The translations under genes and the position numbers were made by a program. Positions 31,363 to 49,784 of a stretch of 64,000 nucleotides of DNA are shown here, in pieces (positions within the stretch are counted from its first letter, which is position 1; every line of letters begins with the position of its first letter). This DNA comes from Geosiphon pyriformis uo1 (Eukaryota; Fungi; Glomeromycota). The notes below the pieces were generated by a model. That model was not told where the DNA came from and searched no databases. It saw only the letters and a program-made list of their open reading frames with translations. Where the stretch lies: contig JAAOMT010000282.1 of the NCBI GenBank assembly GCA_016748015.1, positions 1 to 64,000 of the forward strand, given 5' to 3'.

Positions 31363-32815
31363 AAGTAAATAAAAAGGACTTGACTTCTTTAAGAACATAT
31401 TAAGAGTACAGATTACTTTAAAAAATATCTGTAAACTTTTTAAAAGATTATATTAAAAATATATTTCAATTGTTCCCGGTCAAAGAAATTTTTGTTGGTT
31501 TTTTAAAATGAATAGCTAGAAACTTTTATATTTTCTTAAATTTGAAAAATTTTCATTAAAATTCATGATTACTTTTAAAAATAATAATAATAATTTATTG
31601 AAAAATAAAAAAACTATTTTATAACATGAATTTTTACTTTGCCAAAAAATTTATGTTTGTTTAAGAATTCTTGTATTAAATTTTAAATGTAAAAATTTAT
31701 ATTAAAGAGTAATTATATATCTAATCACAATGGTACATATAAAAAAGTCTAAAGTATCTGAGTCATAATTTGTTTCAATATTATCAGAATTTTGAGAATT
31801 TAACTCTTGTCAATCAAGATTCCCAAGCAAATCTTTAGATTGGACAATAAAAAAAACAAATAATAATTAAGATAATTAATGATTTGAAGTAGTTAAAAAT
31901 TGGTACTTTAGGAAATTTGATCATCACGTTGCAAGGATTTTCAAAAAACTATCAGTTACACAAGTTTCCTTGTTATTAAGAGACATTATAAGTGGCTGTG
32001 TGCAAATCACAATTATCTATTTTTAACTTTTTTTTTTTTAAAGTTCTTTCTGGGGTTGAGGGGAGTAAAAAGTTTTTCAGAAAAATGAAAAATTTGGCGT
32101 CATATTATTAATTTTATTCTCATCCAAAATATGAAATTTAAAGAAATTTTCCTAGTTTTTTAACTTTTATTTTGAATTCCCTAGAAAAGTTTAAACACAT
32201 TTATTCTAATTATTCAAAGAACGAAATTTTTTATCTCCTTTAGTTAACTCTGCAAATTAAATATCTCTTATATGGACCCATTTGGAAAGTTGAAACTTTT
32301 CACAATTTATATCTCCAAATTATTGTAAACGTTTCTGTAAATTTTTTAATCCTTGGTTAATTTTTAAAATTGAGAAAGTCCTTTCCTAATCTGAGTTCTT
32401 TAAAAATAGCATTCTCATTTGAAAAATTTTCTTAATTGAAAAATTAATATTTCTCCTTGTAGAATTCCAAAGAGAATATTCGTTCAAGTTTTGATTTTCT
32501 TAAAAATTTTTCGGTAAAGTTACCATGGTAGGTCAGATTCTCAGCTTGTATTTTATAATGATAAATTTGTATTCTATCATGATAAATTTGTATTCGCAGA
32601 TCAATGTAGTACAATCACATTAGGGTATTTAGTTTTGCCAAGATTCTTATGGGAGTAATAATCAGAAAATTATAAAAACGCCCCAGGTATTTTTTTGATC
32701 CATTGTCTTGAAGAATATTCAAAATCTAAAGACAAGCAATTGCAGTTTTTAGAGTAAAAATTCTTTTTTCACTAGTAAAAATTCCACTTTGAAAACTTCT
32801 TTTAATAAATTAAAA

Positions 32816-33548
32816 ATGTTTCAAATCAAACAAGATTTCAATCACGATTCCAGTCAAAATAATGACAATTCAAATCTCCCCGAATGTTCACCGCAGTTCG
32901 TTCCCATCATCCAAATTCCATTCCCCCCAACTATTAGACCTGAAGAATGTATTAACATAAAGGAAGGTAAACTTCCATCAAAATCACCGAATGCTTTTAT
33001 CATTTATCGTCGTGCTTATCAAAAAGCAGTGCGAGAAAGTGGTCAAGTGATGAGATTAAGCAAGGTTTCTACAATGGCATCTGAAGCTTGGAAAAATGAA
33101 CTTGATTATGTTAAGAATGAGTATCGAAATTTAGCCACACAAGTTGGTATTTATTTGACTAACTTACGTGCAAGAGAATTAATCCAGAAAAATCAAATGC
33201 TCGATCTCTTGAAATCAGGAAATAAAACTTTTATTCACAATATTGAAAATCAACAAATTATTAAAGATTTGTCGTCGGTTGAAAAAAAACAGTCACTTTT
33301 ACAAGTTCCATGTCAAAACAATCACTCTTTATCCCCTTCGGACTCGGCTTATTATGGTAGTGATTTTGGTGATTTCGAATTTGAAAATAACAAAAATTTC
33401 GAATGCGATAAGAACATTCATTCCGATTTTTACCTCTTAAATTCACCAAGTCACTCCCCTTCTTTTCCCGCACCCTCAGAACAGAATCTTTGGGATCTCC
33501 AAAATAATTTTGAATTTGATTCTGTTGATTTTACTGAATTGAACAATT

Positions 33549-33593
<45 letters not shown>

Positions 33594-33871
33594 TAAATTA
33601 TCTGAACACTTCAATTGACTCATTTTATCAAGACTTTATTCAATTTTGTCAAGCAAATAACTTATCACCTGAGATAGACTTTCTTAATAATCCCTACCTT
33701 TCTTCGATAGGATTCTTTCCTGAACAGAATGAAAATATGCTGCTTGACCCTTATGCAAATATGAACTTTCAAATTTCCGAAAATTTAAATTATCAACCTC
33801 AAGAAAATGATGAAATTTTATATTCATCTATTTCTAATTATGCTACCATTTTGTCTCCTATGAATGAATAA
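32816..33871 (+). CDS. MATA_HMG-box transcription factor (351 aa, intronless)
   Basis: First ATG at 32816 (the track's start at 32789 is TTG). HMG box PSKSPNAFIIYRRAYQKAVRESGQVMRLSKVSTMASEAWKNELDYVKNEYRNLA preceded by PFPPTIRPEE. Acidic, aromatic, Asn-rich C-terminus resembles an activation domain and has a poly-N tract. Confidence 0.92.
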
Positions 33872-40549: not shown

Positions 40550-42464
40550 GATTTTCAAGCATCTAAAAATGGATTATCAAACTTTGAATATTTTATATAA
40601 GTAGAGAAAGGTTTTTAAAGAGTTATTCTTGCTAAATATTTAAGCATTTCAACCTATAATTTCGTTAAATAACATTCTCAAAAAGGTTAAGTTTTGAAGA
40701 AATCTGAAACGTTAGAATATAAAAAAATAGATGCTTATTTTATAAAGGTAAACTTCCCTCATTTGCATTGATTAAATGGCAAAAAGGTGAAATATGCTTG
40801 TAATTGTCTTATTGCTATTTTTTAATTTAAATCAAAACCTAAAAGTTGAGTTATACTCTGATTGGTGTCAATGGTTCATAGTATATTCTTTAGCATTTTC
40901 TGCATGGATAATCTAGTTCTAAGATTGCAGATGGTCTTCTTTACCCTAGACGCTTCTTTTACTATTTGTATTTCATTGTGTGAATAAAACCAATTTAACT
41001 AGACTATAATTCAGAAACTAATTTATTAATTTATCATGGAAAAATTTTAAACCTTTAAATTTTAAAATTGTTATCTGTTTTAAACGTCTTTCACCTTGAT
41101 CAGTAGATGAGTATTACTTCTAATACATGCTTATCTACTAATCAAGATATCGATAGAAAATTAATAACATTTTGAACCATTTAGTTGAAATTTGAATATA
41201 TGAGATAAAATATATTTACAAAATTTAACCCAGAAAATCTTTGCCTTGATATTATGTATGATTAATTTTTAAAACCCAGCATAAAATTTGATGTATTATT
41301 ACATTATAAAATAAAAAACATTTTTGCTGTAATAAAACAACCAGTAAAATTTACTCGAAAAAAGAATGAAGTATATTGAAACTTAGAATGTAATTTTCAC
41401 CAAGTTTATTAACATTCAAGTTATGGAATATGAGAACAGATTGGTTCAAAATTTTTAATATTTTGATTTTGAAGTTTGAAAATTTCTTTTCATTTAAGAA
41501 TACCATAACGTTACGAGCAATTTCTTTTATAATTCATTTTGAAATAATAAATTCTGCTATCTCTTTATATGAAAAAGTTTAGAACTTTTATGTCAAAGTA
41601 TTTTAAATAAAAAGTTCTTCAATTGATTTTATTTCAGGTTTTAGGAATAAATCGATCCTTCCCAGTCAAACTCGGAATGATAATATAAAATTAATATGAA
41701 AAAAAAAACAGGAGGATCAATTATTATTTACAAAAAAATTAGTTGATACGAAGTAAAAGTTAGAAGAATTCAAAACAAAACATATTGGTTTCGTGAGGCT
41801 ATAAAAAGTATTAATTCTTGTTTTGTAAATTTATTATACTGAAAATCGTATTCAATGAAATAATATCTGTTCAAACCGCTTTGGTAAACCCTAATTCCAA
41901 GTCTATTCGAAAACTTTATGACTTTAATTTATAAATTTACATTAGTCAATGTATCAATTTTCTTAAAAATCTTAGATTTTTATACTTTTTTATTAATTCT
42001 TTAAATCTGGGATAAAAAATAACCAAATTTATTATGTCTAACTCAAAAAGGGATAAATTAAAAATTCAGTCTAGAACAATCTTCGTAATTAGACTAATCG
42101 CTTCAAACACATGTTAGATTAACTTTTTTCAATTAAAACGCCTAACATTTGATGGGATGATTCGTCTCAAGATTTGGTCAAACTAATTAAATAATTAAAG
42201 AAAAATTAACTAAATATTTTTAAAATTTCCAAATTAAATACCTTTTTTTAAAAATTTTTCGGCATTTTAATGTATAAAATAAAATATTTGACAAAATTTA
42301 TTTTAGAAAAACATTATGCTATTTATCCATTATGAAATTATATACATACTGAAATATGTTAAATTTTACAAACCTACTAATAAAATTAATCTTTCATTTC
42401 TCGGAAAATCTAAAAAGTTTTATCTACAGTACTCACAAAAACTAAAACGTAATTTGGATGTGTA

Positions 42465-42835
42465 ATCACTTTTAAGATATCAAGTTTTCTCATTTTTTTG
42501 AGAAATAAACTTGAAATTTGGGTTACTTTCTATGGCTCTTCAACATAATAATATTGTTGTGTAAAAAAATGACACCTACTTAAAAAAGGGAAGATTTTGA
42601 TATACTTGAAAACCATAATTCCTGCTAAATCGCAAAAATCCTTGGATGTAATTTCACAACAATATGCTGCTTTATTAACAAGTATCAAAAAAATAGAGAA
42701 ATGAAAAATTATTATATTCTAAAGACCACAGATTGTTAGCAACCACAAAAAAATTTGCTGGTATGTAAAGCAAAAAATTGTCAACAATTTAGGTTTAAAT
42801 ATAATCTATTAACTGCTGCAAATATACTCTACAAT
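42465..42835 (+). repeat. Dispersed repeat family B, copy 2
   Basis: Colinear similarity with 29955-30245. Confidence 0.7.
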
Positions 42836-43266
42836 AAAGGGTTATCTATTTCATTGTCGTCACTCCATCAATGATTGTAAAATACAGAAAGTAATAGCAG
42901 AATTGAAATTTAGATTTGAATTAAAAAATATATGGATGCACGAGCAAAATTTTGAAAGCTTACCAAATCTTCATTCAAATTAAGCTTTTTTACCTTGAAA
43001 TAATGAAAATGAAGTCTATGACATAGGGCTTTTACATGTATCTAGATTGGATAAAAAGGAAAAAGCTTTATGTGTGGTAATTTTTCCCTGTTGTTCGTTA
43101 ATTTTTTTCACACACACAGTAACTACAAATAATCAAACTTTAAAGATTAAAAAGCAATTTTAATATGAGGCTAATCATTAAGGTCTAACTATAAAGATTT
43201 CAAAATCCCCTTCTCGAATCTCGCTTGCAAGCATCTTAGGTCTTTATTTTGTGACAAAGGCCTAAA

Positions 43267-43324
<58 letters not shown>

Positions 43325-44079
43325 GCCAATTAAAAATATGCCATTCTTAAATTTCAGAGTGGGACACATTGTTAATTAAAATAATAAAGGCAAATATTTT
43401 GAAGCTTCTAATGAATAGACACAATAGGAAATAAAGCTGACTACTAGATAACACAATACGTTGAATGGGTTTTCAATTGCATGCCTTAAAACTATATTTA
43501 AAAATTTATCGAACTCTCATATCCTTTGAAAATTTCTTTAGTATACAAGTGACACGTTAGACATAGCGTCACAAGAACATGATATAATATTAAGGTCCCT
43601 GAAGAACAATACCTAGTTTGAAATCTATGTTGTACATTCTACTTTAGAAAGTTTTTTTTTGTTTTTAACAAGCTTTTAAATTCAAATCAAGATTAAAAGT
43701 GGAATAATTGTTTAAAATAAGGTTTTCATTAAAAATAAAATGTAAAAATTGTAGAAACCATTTTTTTTTCAGTTGGACATGATAAGCCATTCAAAATCGA
43801 AAATTGTCACACTAAAAAATGAAATTTACAAATATCAAAATTAAATTGAAAGCTATAATACAATTTGTAACACTGTATTTAGTTTACCATTATATCTATA
43901 GAAGAACAATGAAAGCTTTACTTTTTATTTCTAGAAAATAGAAAAATATTTTACAATTGTTATTTTCTTTATAAAACTCACCTGAAGTCTTTGCTACTTT
44001 TTTAAATTTCAACACCTCTCATCTCTCAAAGACAAAAATCGCAATTTGAGTTCACTTTATCAAAAAACTAAGAATCAAA

Positions 44080-44259
44080 ATGCATCAAATCAATACCACT
44101 TTAAGAAATCAAACCGCTTTGATCTTCAAAACGTTTGAAGGAAGAGAAAATACTAGGAAGCCATTAAAACCTTCGCAAACTTATCAAATGAATACTCCAA
44201 ATGAAACGAACCAAAGCCAATTATCGACGTTCAGTGAAGGTGGTTTACCTTGGTTCTAA
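44080..44259 (+). CDS. Candidate small ORF (59 aa), unknown function
   Basis: MHQINTTLRNQTALIFKTFEGRENTRKPLKPSQTYQMNTPNETNQSQLSTFSEGGLPWF-stop. TATAAAA at 43970-43976, pyrimidine-rich leader, caaaATG context, locally raised GC. Confidence 0.4.
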   Translation: MHQINTTLRNQTALIFKTFEGRENTRKPLKPSQTYQMNTPNETNQSQLSTFSEGGLPWF

Positions 44260-44336
44260 AACCAAAGTGGGATAAAAATTACGACGTTCAGTAAAGGTGT
44301 TTACCTGGTCCTAAAACCAGTGTGAGATAAAAATTG
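44225..44336 (+). repeat. Imperfect tandem duplication, about 57-bp unit x2
   Basis: cgacgttcagtgaaggtggtttaccttggttctaaaaccaaagtgggataaaaatt followed by cgacgttcagtaaaggtgtttacctggtcctaaaaccagtgtgagataaaaatt. Confidence 0.85.
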
Positions 44337-45163
44337 TAAAGTTAAAAATTTATTATTTATTTAGTGAGACAAACTGGAATTAAGTTGTAATTCAAGTTGA
44401 CATAACTTCAAACTATTCAATAGTAATTAATTGTATATAAAAATAGTGACCTAATATTTAAATCTATAATACTAATGTAAAAAGATATTCAGTTGTTTCT
44501 TTGATTTTCAAATGCAGCAAACTTGTACCAGATTAATTAAAATATTTTATAAATAAAATCTTTGATTTACCAAAATAATTCAAAAAAAGCCCTTGGTCTT
44601 TATGGGGTGTACCAAAATTACGTTTCAAAACTTTGTAATTTTTATGCGACCTCTAACGGATAAACAAGGCAAACTTATCTTTGGAATTGATAAACTGTAA
44701 ATTGAACTTTGGATATTCCCGAGCTTGCTCTATTTACTATAGTTAATTCTCATTTGTCAATCAAAAATAGCCAAGAATTACCAAGAATTATTTCAAACTA
44801 AAACAGATATTCAAGTACAAAGTGGTAGTCAAATATAAAATAAAATACTATTACCAAAATACTTCAAAAATTACCATAGGAATGGAAAATAATTATGTAG
44901 AAAATTTTTCTTGAATCAATAGAGTGATTTATTAAGGTTTTTCATTAGATCGAAATTTCAAACTTCATTTAATTTTTCAAAAATTTTTTTAGAAATATTT
45001 TATTGGCTAGCTCAAAAATCCATGAGTTTACATAAAGGGTATTGCTTCAAAACAATACCCTATTCTAAACCTTGGAACATGAAACATGAATCATAAATCA
45101 TGAAATATTTGTCATAGCACAATTATTAACAGAAATTGGATAATCGTAACTTTAGAGTAATAA

Positions 45164-45575
45164 TTTTTAGCATTGTTCGTATATATTCTTCGTACAACAA
45201 TGTGCCACATGATTAACAAAAACCTGTTTTTAGCATTGTTAATTAATTCACAGATACCCCATAAACACTTAATAAATCTCCTTAATGGCTGAATTTGAAA
45301 ATGAATGTACTAGTTAAGATGATATCAAAAAACAATGCTCCGTCTGCTCTATTCCCACTGATAATGATTAAATTAAATTAAATTTTGAATATTATTTGCA
45401 TTTTATACATTGTTTGGATAGCTAAACAATGGGGGTCTGCCGAATTATTAATTAAAATAGAACAATAAATTATATCGGTTATTGTCAAAAATTTTGGTTT
45501 TTAACATTCTGTTTCAATTTACATTGTTTTTAATGACAGGTGTTAATATGAAGGTTATGAATTTTTTCTATAAAA
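45164..45575 (+). promoter_or_regulatory. Promoter with clustered SOX/MATA-HMG-type sites (AACAATG) and TATA box
   Basis: AACAATG or CATTGTT at 45171, 45196, 45234, 45331, 45408, 45425 and 45522; AACAAT at 45461; TATAAAA at 45569-45575. Confidence 0.75.
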
Positions 45576-45634
45576 TTGGTTGTGCTCTCCCAATTTCTTT
45601 TCATTCAATCAAACTAAAATAACTAAAAGAAAAG

Positions 45635-45668
45635 AAAAGAAAAGAAAAGAAAAGAAAAGAAAAGAAAA
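45635..45668 (+). repeat. (AAAAG)n microsatellite in the putative 5' UTR of the CaaX peptide gene
   Basis: Directly visible pentamer run between the TATA box and the ATG. Confidence 0.9.
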
Positions 45669-45715
45669 AAACTATAACAACATTCAAAGTAAATCAATCA
45701 AAAAACTTAAAGAAA

Positions 45716-45847
45716 ATGCAACCAACAACCAACAATCAATCTTCATTCAATCCTTTATCAATAATTGCTCCTGGCAACGGCTCTATTAAAGGACCAACCG
45801 GTGACCCAGACGATGGTAGCGGTACCGGACAATGCTCTATTATGTAA
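45716..45847 (+). CDS. Putative CaaX lipopeptide (a-factor-like) pheromone precursor, 43 aa
   Basis: MQPTTNNQSSFNPLSIIAPGNGSIKGPTGDPDDGSGTGQCSIM-stop. Terminal CSIM farnesylation motif, sole Cys, no signal peptide, GC-rich island, aaaATG context, upstream TATA and HMG-site cluster. Confidence 0.75.
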   Translation: MQPTTNNQSSFNPLSIIAPGNGSIKGPTGDPDDGSGTGQCSIM

Positions 45848-47862
45848 AATTTGTAGAGTATTGTTATTGAGAAGTCTCTTTTCTTGACACCGCCATTATT
45901 CTTTGCGCGTAAACTTTTCACCGAATCGAAATTCGTGAAAGTTTCTGGTCAAAATCTGAGGAAAACGTCAGGACTTTATTCAAATTAGTTGAGATCCAAA
46001 TTGAACTCTTTAAATCATTAACTAGTCATTAATAATGAACTCAAAGTTAAACCTATCGTGACTATTCGAAACCAAATGATATAGATAATATTCTTGTATT
46101 TAATTATTCATCTAAAATTTTTAAATTTCGACTTGTTTTACATAATGTAATTAATTTTACCAAAGATCTGATAAATTTGTTGTTATTAAATTAAACTTGT
46201 CAAGAACCACAAATTCTTTTTTCTCAAAATCTTTTAATCAGATTTTCTTACAACTACCGGTTTCGTTAGTAAAGAAAATCTTTGACCATTACTTAAAATT
46301 AAACAGAACAAACCAAAAAATTGACTCATTCAAGACCAGAAATTGAATAAAGAATTCTATACGCATACCAATTATGTGACCATATTAACTGAATTTAATT
46401 TAAATTAAATGTTTAATTTTTTCAAATTGCCAACCCGACACGACCTACAACCCAATTAATGTACTCGGGTCAGATACGGATTCGAAAATATACTAATTTT
46501 TTTTTGACTTTAAGTAAAAATACTTACGAAGCTTGCTCTTTCTCTAGGGTCAGGTCAGAACGGGTTGAAATCGGGTCGGATCAATTCCAAACCCATGTCA
46601 TGAATATTTTTATAACTTATTAATTATTAAAATTGATAAAATTTTTGGTGATGTTATTAATTGAAATTGAAACCAAAAATTATCATGAAATTACTTTTAA
46701 TTCCTATTATTAACTCTTTTACACATAATTTCTAAAAAATAAATAGTTAAAATTATTGAGAGATTTTTTTCTAATTCACTTTCAGTAATTATTATTAATT
46801 AAACAATTTAATATTTTATAACTTTAAAATTTGTTAGTTAAGATATAAAGTTATATTATTAATTTTTTATCGAATTCAGATAATTAAAAATTTAGTGTAA
46901 TTTTTAAATCAATTTTTTTTGATATTGATTTTAATTTATTTTTTTATTTTTTATTAATAATATAAAGTAATTATAACATAAAAAATGCTTCACAATTTTA
47001 AAAACCTAAATCAATTATTTTCTTATTTGTTTAGAGATCTCTGCCTAAAACAAAAGAATAAATATTAAATGTTTTAAATATTCTTGATTAATATAAAAAC
47101 GCAGCAAATATTAAAATATAAATTTATCACAACAATAAAAAAATAATAGTTTTGATATTAGGCATAACCGAAACGGTTTATTATTAGCAATCATTTATTA
47201 TTTAGTGAATAGAAGCTGCGAGAAGTTGATTACTATATGCATATGCATTTTAGTTGATATATCCTTTATTATTAAAGAAGACAAAAAAAGAAAAGGAAGG
47301 CAATAAATAAAATCATAATTAAAAACTAAAAAGTCATACAGGAGAAAACCGAGCTAAACAAGTTCGGCAATTACCAATATTCTACGGAATATCAAGCATT
47401 AGGGTCATCAAAGCCGTTATTAGATGATCAAAAATAGCCTTAGCTTTTAAGTAACCAGCGTTAAAGTTAGAAAAGTTAGAAAAGTAATGAACAATGCAAT
47501 ATAACGAATTAGTCATATTGAACAACGCAGAAAAGCCTGAAGAGAAATTAACTAAAACTTTTTTTCTACTGGAAAAAACACTGATATTGCTAACCAAGTT
47601 TTTTTTTATACCAACCACAGACGAATTCTAAATCGAAAAGCTAACGACACAAAAGAAATAGACATACGCGAGCTATTTTTTTAGCAATTATTTAAAATAA
47701 GGGAAGAAATAGTCGAGGACGACGAACCAAGGCAGAAATTACTATAAATAAAGCCATGATTGGTTTAGAACTTAACAAAGAAAATCAAAAACAAGAGCAC
47801 AAACTTGTCAATACAATCAAATTAAAGGGAAAATATTGTGCATCTAATAAATAAAACAGCTA

Positions 47863-47948
47863 CGGTAAAGTCCTGAAAATAAGCAACCCTCTACATCATC
47901 AATCTTGCACCAAATTTAGGATGGTCGTTTATTTTCGGGACTTTACCA
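47863..47948. mobile_element. 86-bp MITE-like element with about 26-bp terminal inverted repeats and TA flanks (Tc1/mariner/pogo type)
   Basis: Left end TA|cggtaaagtcctgaaaataagcaacc; reverse complement of right end TA|tggtaaagtcccgaaaataaacgacc. Confidence 0.7.
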
Positions 47949-47952
47949 TAAA

Positions 47953-48052
47953 TAAAAAATTAAATCTAACATCAACTAGAACTAAAAAATTAAATCTAAC
48001 ATCAACTAGAACTAAAAAATTAAATCTAACATCAACTAGAACTAAAAAATTA
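47953..48052 (+). repeat. Perfect 30-bp tandem repeat, about 3.3 copies
   Basis: Unit taaaaaattaaatctaacatcaactagaac repeated without spacers. Confidence 0.95.
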
Positions 48053-48599
48053 GAATTATTCAAGTTTGATATTCCCTAACTATTTTTTCATTTTTAAATT
48101 CTTTGTTAAATTGAGAATAATATTTTAAAACTGATATTTTTAATGGTATAATTTATTATGTTTCATTTACTTGTAATAATAATATGTTTATCTAAAAATT
48201 AAAACAATTGAGTTAACAATTTTTTTTTAATTTAATTAAACTGATTAATTATAAATAATAAAATGAATATGATAATTAATAGTAAATCGAAATGTAAAAT
48301 TTGGTGAATTCACCCATAAATGAATGATACTTTCATGGAATACCATTTTAGAAAAACGGAAGTTTCCTATGAAATAAGATAAACAATCAGATAAAGTTAA
48401 TAATATTGTTTAACTATTGTTGACGTAATCGATGCCGACGTAATAATAGAAATTCGTTTTCGAAATAATAATAATAATAGATAAAAATCTTTATAAAGAA
48501 AGCCTCTTTTCACGATTCAGAGCAAAATATATCGATAAAATTCATCAACTCCTCTTTTTATTATATTCTCATAATACTTATTCGGATTTTATTTACGCA

Positions 48600-49088
48600 A
48601 TGGAAACCATTGAAATTAAAAGAACTCGTCCGGAAGCTCATGATTGTAACAAGTGTGAAGAGTGCCAAAAGAGCATAAAAAATAACAAGAAGAATTATTG
48701 CGGCGCATGTCAAGTCTTATTTCTTGAGAAGCTTTATAAGGACTTCTCAAGCGGAAACAAAGTAGTTGACGAGTTAATTAAGAATCCAATTTATACACCT
48801 AAATACAATCAAAAACATCATTTTGAATGGATTCCGTGGGATCGTTTAAAGGATATTAATAAAATTGCAAAAGGAGAATTTGGTGTTATTTATAAAGCAA
48901 CATGGATTGATGGATTAATCGATTTAAATAGTATTAAACATCATGGTGAAATGGATTATAAAAGGAATAAATTTACAAAAGAGAAAGAGGTAACAATAAA
49001 GTTTATAAACACATCTTTTCAGAAGAATGAAGAACTCTTTAAAGAGGTATTATTATTATTATTATTATTCTTATTATTCTTATTATTC

Positions 49089-49145
<57 letters not shown>

Positions 49146-49784
49146 TCATTATTTATTATTATTTAACTATTATTTATATTATTTAATTAACTATTTTTTT
49201 GACTTTTGACAGATAAATATACAAAGAGCTATATTCATTGAGAGTGGGAAACTCTCATATACCTCTCTAATAATAGGGATTACTCAAAATGCTGAAACAC
49301 TCGAGTATGGGATTGTGATGGAGCTTGCAGAAAGTGGAGATATGCGAAAATTTCTGTCAAAAAATTCTCATTCTAATCCTCGGAATAATAAATTATGGAC
49401 AACCAAAAATATTATTAAAGGACTTGATAGAATTCATTTTAAGCAATCATCAGAAAAGAACATTAAAGAAACTGCAGAAAGCGATGACACAAAAAAGACT
49501 TTAACTAAAATTCATCCAAACGCAGTTTATACAAGTCGTCTTTTAACTTTAAAAATGATTGAAGGATCTAATGGTTTGTTCATTATTTAATTTATTTAAT
49601 TTATTTAATTCAATTTTGGTTTAGATTATATTTTTAACTTGTTTTATTTTCATCTATGAATTCTAATTAACAAGAACTTATTTATATCCCTGAAGGTAAG
49701 AAGCTAAAGAAAGGTTTAATATGATTATTTACTCTTGTTAACGTTTTTTTCTCGGTATTTTATTTAGATGACTCTAAAAAATGA
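48600..49784 (+). CDS. Truncated tyrosine-kinase-like family protein (N-lobe only; pseudokinase or young pseudogene); exons 48600-49046, 49213-49573, 49675-49695, 49768-49784
   Basis: FSSGNKVVDELI, FEWIPWDRLKDINKIAKGEFGVIYKATWIDG, VTIK, IIGITQNAETLEYGIVMELAESGDMRKFL and KGLDRIH are followed directly by the tail KIHPNAVYTSRLL. No HRD, DFG or APE motifs. GT-AG introns keep frame. Confidence 0.8.

Follow-up and report, generated by a model that had tools for sequence, protein, structure and literature searches.

The stretch of Geosiphon pyriformis DNA considered here (the window, 64 kb at its full length) contains, at positions 45716-45847 of the forward strand, a small open reading frame (ORF) of 43 codons that ends in CSIM followed by a stop codon, and that has the make-up of an a-factor-type pheromone precursor, namely a short conserved ORF with a C-terminal CaaX motif. 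It is preceded on the same strand by an (AAAAG)n microsatellite (45626-45667), which presumably belongs to the 5′ leader and differs in length among the copies of the gene, and by a TATA box of the form TATAAAA (45569-45575), already noticed at 45569 in an earlier reading of the letters (the sequence-only reading) and kept in nearly all copies. Upstream of the TATA box lies a dense group of the heptamer AACAATG. The whole region is also part of a segmental duplication, positions 41742-49404 being 92% identical to C778:64136-71000, and the twin gene copy on C778 keeps six of the seven sites described below. Elsewhere in the window, the forward strand carries, 12 kb ahead of the pheromone-like gene, an ORF (32789-33871) that matches the Pfam HMG_box family (E 1.9e-6); all the relatives found for it are from Glomeromycotina (Ambispora, Funneliformis, Rhizophagus and Glomus), and a search for a relative of solved structure found none. 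On the reverse strand, 14813-15727 encodes a Sel1-repeat protein (E 2e-51), of a family that is typical of Glomeromycotina genomes.

Seven exact copies of AACAATG, or of its complement CATTGTT, fall within 358 nt (45171-45528). The forward strand carries AACAATG at 45196-45202, at 45331-45337 and from 45425, the reverse strand at 45171-45177, at 45234-45240, from 45408 and at 45522-45528. In the whole 64-kb window the word occurs 14 times, versus 16.4 expected from shuffled sequence, so that half of its occurrences are packed into the 358-nt span. The genome-wide count (38,987 in 128.3 Mb, i.e. 0.30 per kb) leads to an expectation of 0.11 copies for the span, which agrees with the value of about 0.1 that the sequence-only reading had estimated roughly, along with the seven copies themselves, each of which is found where it had placed it. 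When the window was simulated 200 times with a first-order Markov model that kept the local composition, no 358-nt span held more than three copies, versus the seven observed. The longer words pointed out in the same reading are likewise present: the two copies of the 14-mer TTTTTAGCATTGTT are at 45164 and 45227, AGCATTGTT is found three times counting both strands, and a dyad occupies 45408-45431.

The small ORF, which the sequence-only reading had taken for a real gene, is one of a family. Together with its flanks it is found at 37 places in the genome, some of them single copies and the others grouped in tandem arrays (C729, C578, C551 and C622). The 33 intact copies comprise 29 distinct DNA sequences but encode only eight proteins; the codon differences among them are 4700 synonymous versus 578 non-synonymous, and the variable sites at the first, second and third codon positions number 9, 11 and 33, respectively. 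The small number of proteins and the synonymous excess mean that the gene is real and under strong purifying selection, as had been supposed. At NCBI, identical or near-identical proteins are on record for G. pyriformis as hypothetical. The deposited gene models of the family, in both Geosiphon and Ambispora, are mis-called, being extended or spliced past the stop codon that follows the CaaX motif, or fused to a 790-residue neighbour, with the result that the CaaX end is hidden in protein databases. A 444-nt contig of the public run X1 covers 45680-46081 (forward strand) with no differences, and the 3.4 kb on each side of that stretch are without coverage; the contig, from a run that may be of DNA rather than RNA, is suggestive of a short transcript. 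Runs X17, X2 and X3 gave no match to the stretch. A word search for homologues beyond Geosiphon returned none, and the relatives brought up by an exhaustive HMMER search with a peptide profile were confined to Ambispora leptoticha and A. gerdemannii, members like Geosiphon of the order Archaeosporales.

The association of the heptamer with the gene extends to the whole family. The 1-kb regions upstream of all 37 copies hold 85 AACAATG, those downstream seven. Among the 33 intact copies, 72 occurrences are found between -450 and -130, versus two between -1000 and -680 and two downstream. When all words were counted without bias against a background of 152 kb of other Geosiphon DNA, ACAATG was the top 6-mer (98 observed versus 5.7 expected) and AACAATG the top 7-mer (72 versus 2.4), the latter being present in 28 of the 33 promoters. 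The shared ancestry of the paralogs and possible gene conversion among them inflate all such within-genome statistics. The 80 distinct instances of the site, 47 in one orientation and 33 in the other, yield the extended consensus wAACAATGc. There are three to seven sites per promoter, most often located from about -150 to -330 relative to the ATG (-194 to -545 in the window copy), the TATA box lying 100-150 nt ahead of the ATG, and in most copies 100-125 nt ahead of it. Five of the 33 intact copies lack ACAATG between -600 and -100; one of the five is N-masked and another has a replaced promoter. The degenerate copies, either truncated or with about 50-60% peptide identity, retain no or one site. 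Within the 219 kb of Geosiphon DNA examined for clusters of at least three sites, 17 of the 18 found are family promoters. The eighteenth, C551:51593-51648, has three AACAATG in 56 nt and resembles a broken inverted pair; having no peptide ORF nearby, it probably represents an orphaned remnant of a promoter.

Alignment of 28 non-redundant promoters allows the sites to be told apart by their conservation. The columns of the motifs score 0.58-0.64, versus 0.37 for the remainder of 45150-45559, and this conservation is matched by only 21-85 of 20,000 random block sets, while the median identity of the promoters among paralogs is 0.63. The two distal sites (45171 and 45196) are private to the window copy and to its C778 twin, here 92-95% identical: the former, part of the first copy of TTTTTAGCATTGTT, is found as an exact match in one of the 28 promoters, and the latter, also an exact match, occurs in the window copy and the twin only. 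The other five positions (45234, 45331, 45408, 45425 and 45522) are common to the family and stand above their flanks. At 45234 conservation is 0.54 versus 0.46 in the flanks, the CATTGT core being present in 14 of the 28 promoters and most paralogs reading CATTGTC. At 45331 the exact heptamer is kept in 16 of 28, and conservation is 0.71 versus 0.40 in the flanks. The sites at 45408 and 45425 form an inverted pair, CATTGTT-N10-AACAATG (45408-45431), which is the core of the module. Its family consensus is CATTGTTA-N8-TAACAATG; it is exact in 20 family promoters and present in relaxed form in 23 of 33, and in the majority of copies it starts 115-165 nt upstream of the conserved TATA box. A distance of 17 nt, or approximately 1.6 helical turns, separates its two sites. 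The last site, CATTGTT at 45522-45528 (reverse strand), reads TATTGTT in most copies. The commonest variant of the site is indeed this change from CATTGTT to TATTGTT, a C-to-T transition, seen in 7 of 28 promoters at 45408 and in 21 of 28 at 45522. Paralog alignment places this last site, together with a CATTCT word, in a proximal block (45497-45533) which is the most conserved segment upstream of the TATA box (0.65-0.83). CATTCT is present in 24 of 33 promoters versus 8 of 33 controls and is a word of the TEA/Tec1 type. The same block contains, in the window copy, TGTTTCA (the Ste12 word TGAAACA in reverse), where most paralogs have TGCTTCA. A second dyad signalled in the sequence-only reading, the palindrome GGGTATTG-N8-CAATACCC at 45037-45060, does exist; however, it lies outside the conserved module and is not kept in the family, being found only in the window copy and, when matching is relaxed, in its twin on C778.

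The inverted pair is also specific on the scale of the genome. CATTGTT-N8-12-AACAATG occurs at 37 places in the 128-Mb genome, versus seven for the reversed control; 20 of these lie in promoters of the family, 14 in a dispersed repeat, and three are isolated (on C541, C639 and C661), a number below the control count. One of the isolated pairs, C541:49431-49454, has an HMG-box ORF (C541:50657-50848, reverse strand) about 1.2 kb away. The dispersed repeat has the consensus CATTGCT..GCAATG and is found at approximately 370 places when up to two mismatches are allowed. It is made of three to five tandem 40-nt units with three CATTGC/GCAATG cores each (e.g. L039:1490-1650 and L060:1409-1606), its subrepeats are one base off the HMG word, and it adjoins reverse-transcriptase and integrase fragments, which identifies it as part of an LTR retroelement. 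The 14 places were considered as a possible second class of promoters and were rejected as such, being variants of this retroelement. Conversely, an origin of the family promoter from the transposon was also considered and was rejected, since homology to the retroelement is limited to the (AAAAG)n run; with homology of this extent and an ORF under purifying selection, the promoter does not behave as a transposon or non-genic repeat. Two concerns that accompanied the sequence-only reading can thus be judged. That the segment might belong to a repeat family is formally correct, as the segment is multi-copy, yet the family is one of selected genes and not a transposon; that comparable clusters might be common elsewhere holds to the extent that CAATG-rich clusters exist in the LTR retroelement, but their consensus differs.

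A comparison less dependent on the shared ancestry of the Geosiphon copies is offered by the two Ambispora species, from which five genes with upstream DNA are available, a small sample in which two promoters are homologous to each other. Read from their ATG, the Ambispora ORFs have 39-43 codons and end in CVIM or CIIW. Their promoters give no alignment to those of Geosiphon, and only two align mutually. In the -400 to -100 zones (1500 nt in all) ACAATG occurs 13 times, versus 0.76 per kb elsewhere on the contigs, and AACAATG eight times, versus 0.23 per kb. Both words are present in all five promoters, and they are the top 6-mer (p 3.5e-10) and the top 7-mer (p 5.6e-9), respectively, among the approximately 750-1070 words counted. 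A TATAAA element is found at -114 to -138, much where Geosiphon has its own. The persistence of the motif content where the surrounding sequence has not persisted is the strongest evidence presented here for functional sites. Together, the enrichment across the family, the conserved pair, the genome-wide specificity of that pair and the recurrence in Ambispora establish that the cluster is a conserved cis-regulatory module and not a product of chance.

Which proteins may read the module can be approached from the word itself. WWCAAWG is the word recognized by the sequence-specific HMG boxes (the SRY/SOX consensus), and AACAATG is an exact instance of it; the fit of the word, the excess on the promoter side and the conservation beyond the flanks are the features of a cluster of HMG sites. 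An HMG-box protein is therefore the predicted binder as judged from the DNA, and the genome offers many candidates, with at least 73 HMG-box regions (HMG_box matches); those listed show no consistent linkage to the arrays of peptide genes. The paired inverted sites suggest cooperative binding. In the SOX group, SoxE dimer sites are directed towards each other with 3-4 nt in between, whereas the paired sites of Geosiphon point apart across 10 nt; moreover, the Geosiphon sites belong to a fungus and stand before a pheromone-like gene, unlike those of the SOX systems.

Clustered HMG sites before lipopeptide pheromone genes are also found in Ustilago maydis, where Prf1 sites of the form ACAAAGGGA at the a locus control such genes. 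Prf1 has been named as an HMG pheromone-response factor (PMC7490403). Unlike these pheromone response elements (PREs), which are of the ACAAAG type, the module of Geosiphon is of the ACAATG type, and ACAAAGGGA occurs 0 times in the family promoters. The likeness is greater with Schizosaccharomyces pombe, where the ACAATG M-box bound by Mat1-Mc lies before the M-factor genes mfm1-3 (PMC1693924, Table 3). There, as in Geosiphon, the gene downstream is a multi-copy gene for a short CaaX lipopeptide precursor, (A)ACAATG is found 130-200 nt ahead of the ATG, and the HMG sites are spaced by a comparable distance, about 1.5 helical turns versus the 1.6 of the inverted pair (PMC1693924). An M-box of this type upstream of the CaaX gene is thus common to both organisms. 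The differences lie in the arrangement, the sites of Geosiphon being two words of the ACAATG type in inverted orientation, in the absence of the weak Ste11 box (AACAAAG) that in S. pombe follows the M-box by 14-26 nt, and in scale, as S. pombe has three gene copies and Geosiphon about 33 with several sites in each promoter. Furthermore, the S. pombe receptor gene mam2 is listed among the M-specific genes (PMC1693924), whereas the STE3 receptor gene of Geosiphon is without the element. A third scheme is that of the Saccharomycotina, where the HMG protein Mata2 directly activates the a-specific genes in what is regarded as the ancestral arrangement (bioRxiv 10.1101/565234). An HMG mating-type protein that activates mating genes would be the feature shared with Geosiphon; unlike the Mata2-Mcm1 operator, which is composite and 24-27 nt long, the Geosiphon module is homotypic, with no adjacent Mcm1 site. 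Words of possible partners are indeed not enriched in the 33 promoters: AACAAAG (the Ste11/Prf1/TCF type) is absent between -450 and -130, the Ste11 TR box AACAAAGA occurs twice versus twice in controls, the Mcm1-type CC(A/T)6GG once versus twice, and the Ste12 PRE is not enriched either. With no enrichment of Ste11, Mcm1, Prf1 or Ste12 partner sites, the module fits neither the S. pombe nor the Mata2-Mcm1 architecture.

The sequence-only reading had also suggested that other mating genes, the STE3-like receptor gene among them, be inspected for the same clusters. The single STE3-type receptor gene of Geosiphon (C642:334886-335808) has no AACAATG, and hence no cluster, in its 1.5 kb upstream, and the two isoprenylcysteine methyltransferase (ICMT) loci show single scattered sites and no cluster. 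A wider HMG-controlled mating regulon is thus not supported.

In the light of the above, the stretch 45230-45575 is probably the promoter of a lipopeptide-pheromone-like gene, built as a homotypic cluster of HMG-type words and placed under HMG control. One or more factors of the MATA/SOX type would bind in the minor groove at these words and thus bend the double helix, the inverted pair being possibly occupied by a dimer or by two partners, and the bound factors would switch on the approximately 30 gene copies together, the module being expected to activate rather than to repress. The peptide would, in turn, act as a mating pheromone, with the single STE3-type receptor as its sensor. More tentatively, and with a chance that we put at about one in three, the module would be the output of a working HMG mating circuit of the Archaeosporales, in which one protein of the much enlarged MATA-HMG family, or a mating-type-specific subset of them, switches on about 30 lipopeptide pheromone genes whose products act on the single STE3.

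Another explanation would be that the words are kept merely by shared descent and gene conversion among young duplicates, or belong to a mobile repeat, and have no regulatory role. The tandem arrays on C729, C578 and C551, the location of the window copy in a 92% segmental duplicate and the CAATG-rich clusters of the LTR retroelement all speak for it. However, mere descent would hardly leave motif columns well above their flanks in promoters as divergent as these, nor place several sites per promoter, in both orientations, in a zone that holds 72 of them while the downstream and far-upstream regions hold two each; besides, the retroelement shares with the promoters nothing beyond the (AAAAG)n run, and the Ambispora promoters, which cannot be aligned with those of Geosiphon, are enriched in this word as well. 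This explanation is, therefore, already disfavoured and is considered very improbable. A selected element read by a protein of another kind, such as a forkhead, a TEA/ATTS or a lineage-specific factor, with the match to the HMG word being a coincidence, deserves more attention, given that the conserved core is of 6-7 nt only and that the TEA/Tec1-type CATTCT accompanies it in the proximal block of 24 of the 33 promoters. It is nevertheless judged unlikely: the core with its flanks, wAACAATGc, fits WWCAAWG exactly, the forkhead consensus RYMAAYA is a misfit because most copies read TTAACAATG, the same word marks the HMG-controlled lipopeptide pheromone genes of S. pombe (PMC1693924), and HMG-box genes are very numerous in the Geosiphon genome.

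HMG control and mating are, on the other hand, separable, and HMG-type sites might serve repression, architectural bending in the manner of Rox1, or the response to a developmental or symbiotic cue, the peptides being unrelated to sex. The lack of clusters at the STE3 and ICMT loci, the mass production suggested by about 33 copies with identical products, and the fact that sex has never been observed in the group (PMC3834313) would be in line with such a role. Against it stand the position of the sites upstream of the TATA box and the a-factor-like product, which parallel those of yeast pheromone genes under activator control (PMC1693924; bioRxiv 10.1101/565234), and the presence of a single STE3-type receptor, so that such a role is given perhaps one chance in eight. 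Control of a lipopeptide-pheromone-like gene by HMG-box factors is the reading that we retain.

Textbooks present arbuscular mycorrhizal (AM) fungi and their relatives as 'ancient asexuals'. Their genomes nonetheless contain one STE3, STE6 and a full MAP-kinase pathway, with no pheromone gene found (Halary et al., 2013, PMC3834313), and HMG-box genes that are induced when isolates coexist (Mateus et al., PMC7490403); the role of their many HMG-box genes is debated (PMC7490403). The module, which recurs before about 28 Geosiphon paralogs and before their diverged relatives in two Ambispora species, adds the regulatory side to the pheromone-like gene family of Geosiphon, and it joins the many MATA-HMG genes and the receptor that lacks a ligand in a single testable circuit, naming the exact DNA to be used in binding and reporter assays. 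The signature of at least three ACAATG, followed by a TATA box and then by a short CaaX ORF, is a possible handle for genes of this kind in other Glomeromycotina, among them the pheromone genes that are still missing from the Glomerales and Diversisporales. The AACAATG cluster is very likely the switch for the candidate mating signals of Geosiphon and Ambispora; should the more tentative reading of a working mating circuit hold, the circuit leading from an HMG factor to a CaaX pheromone gene would predate the Dikarya.
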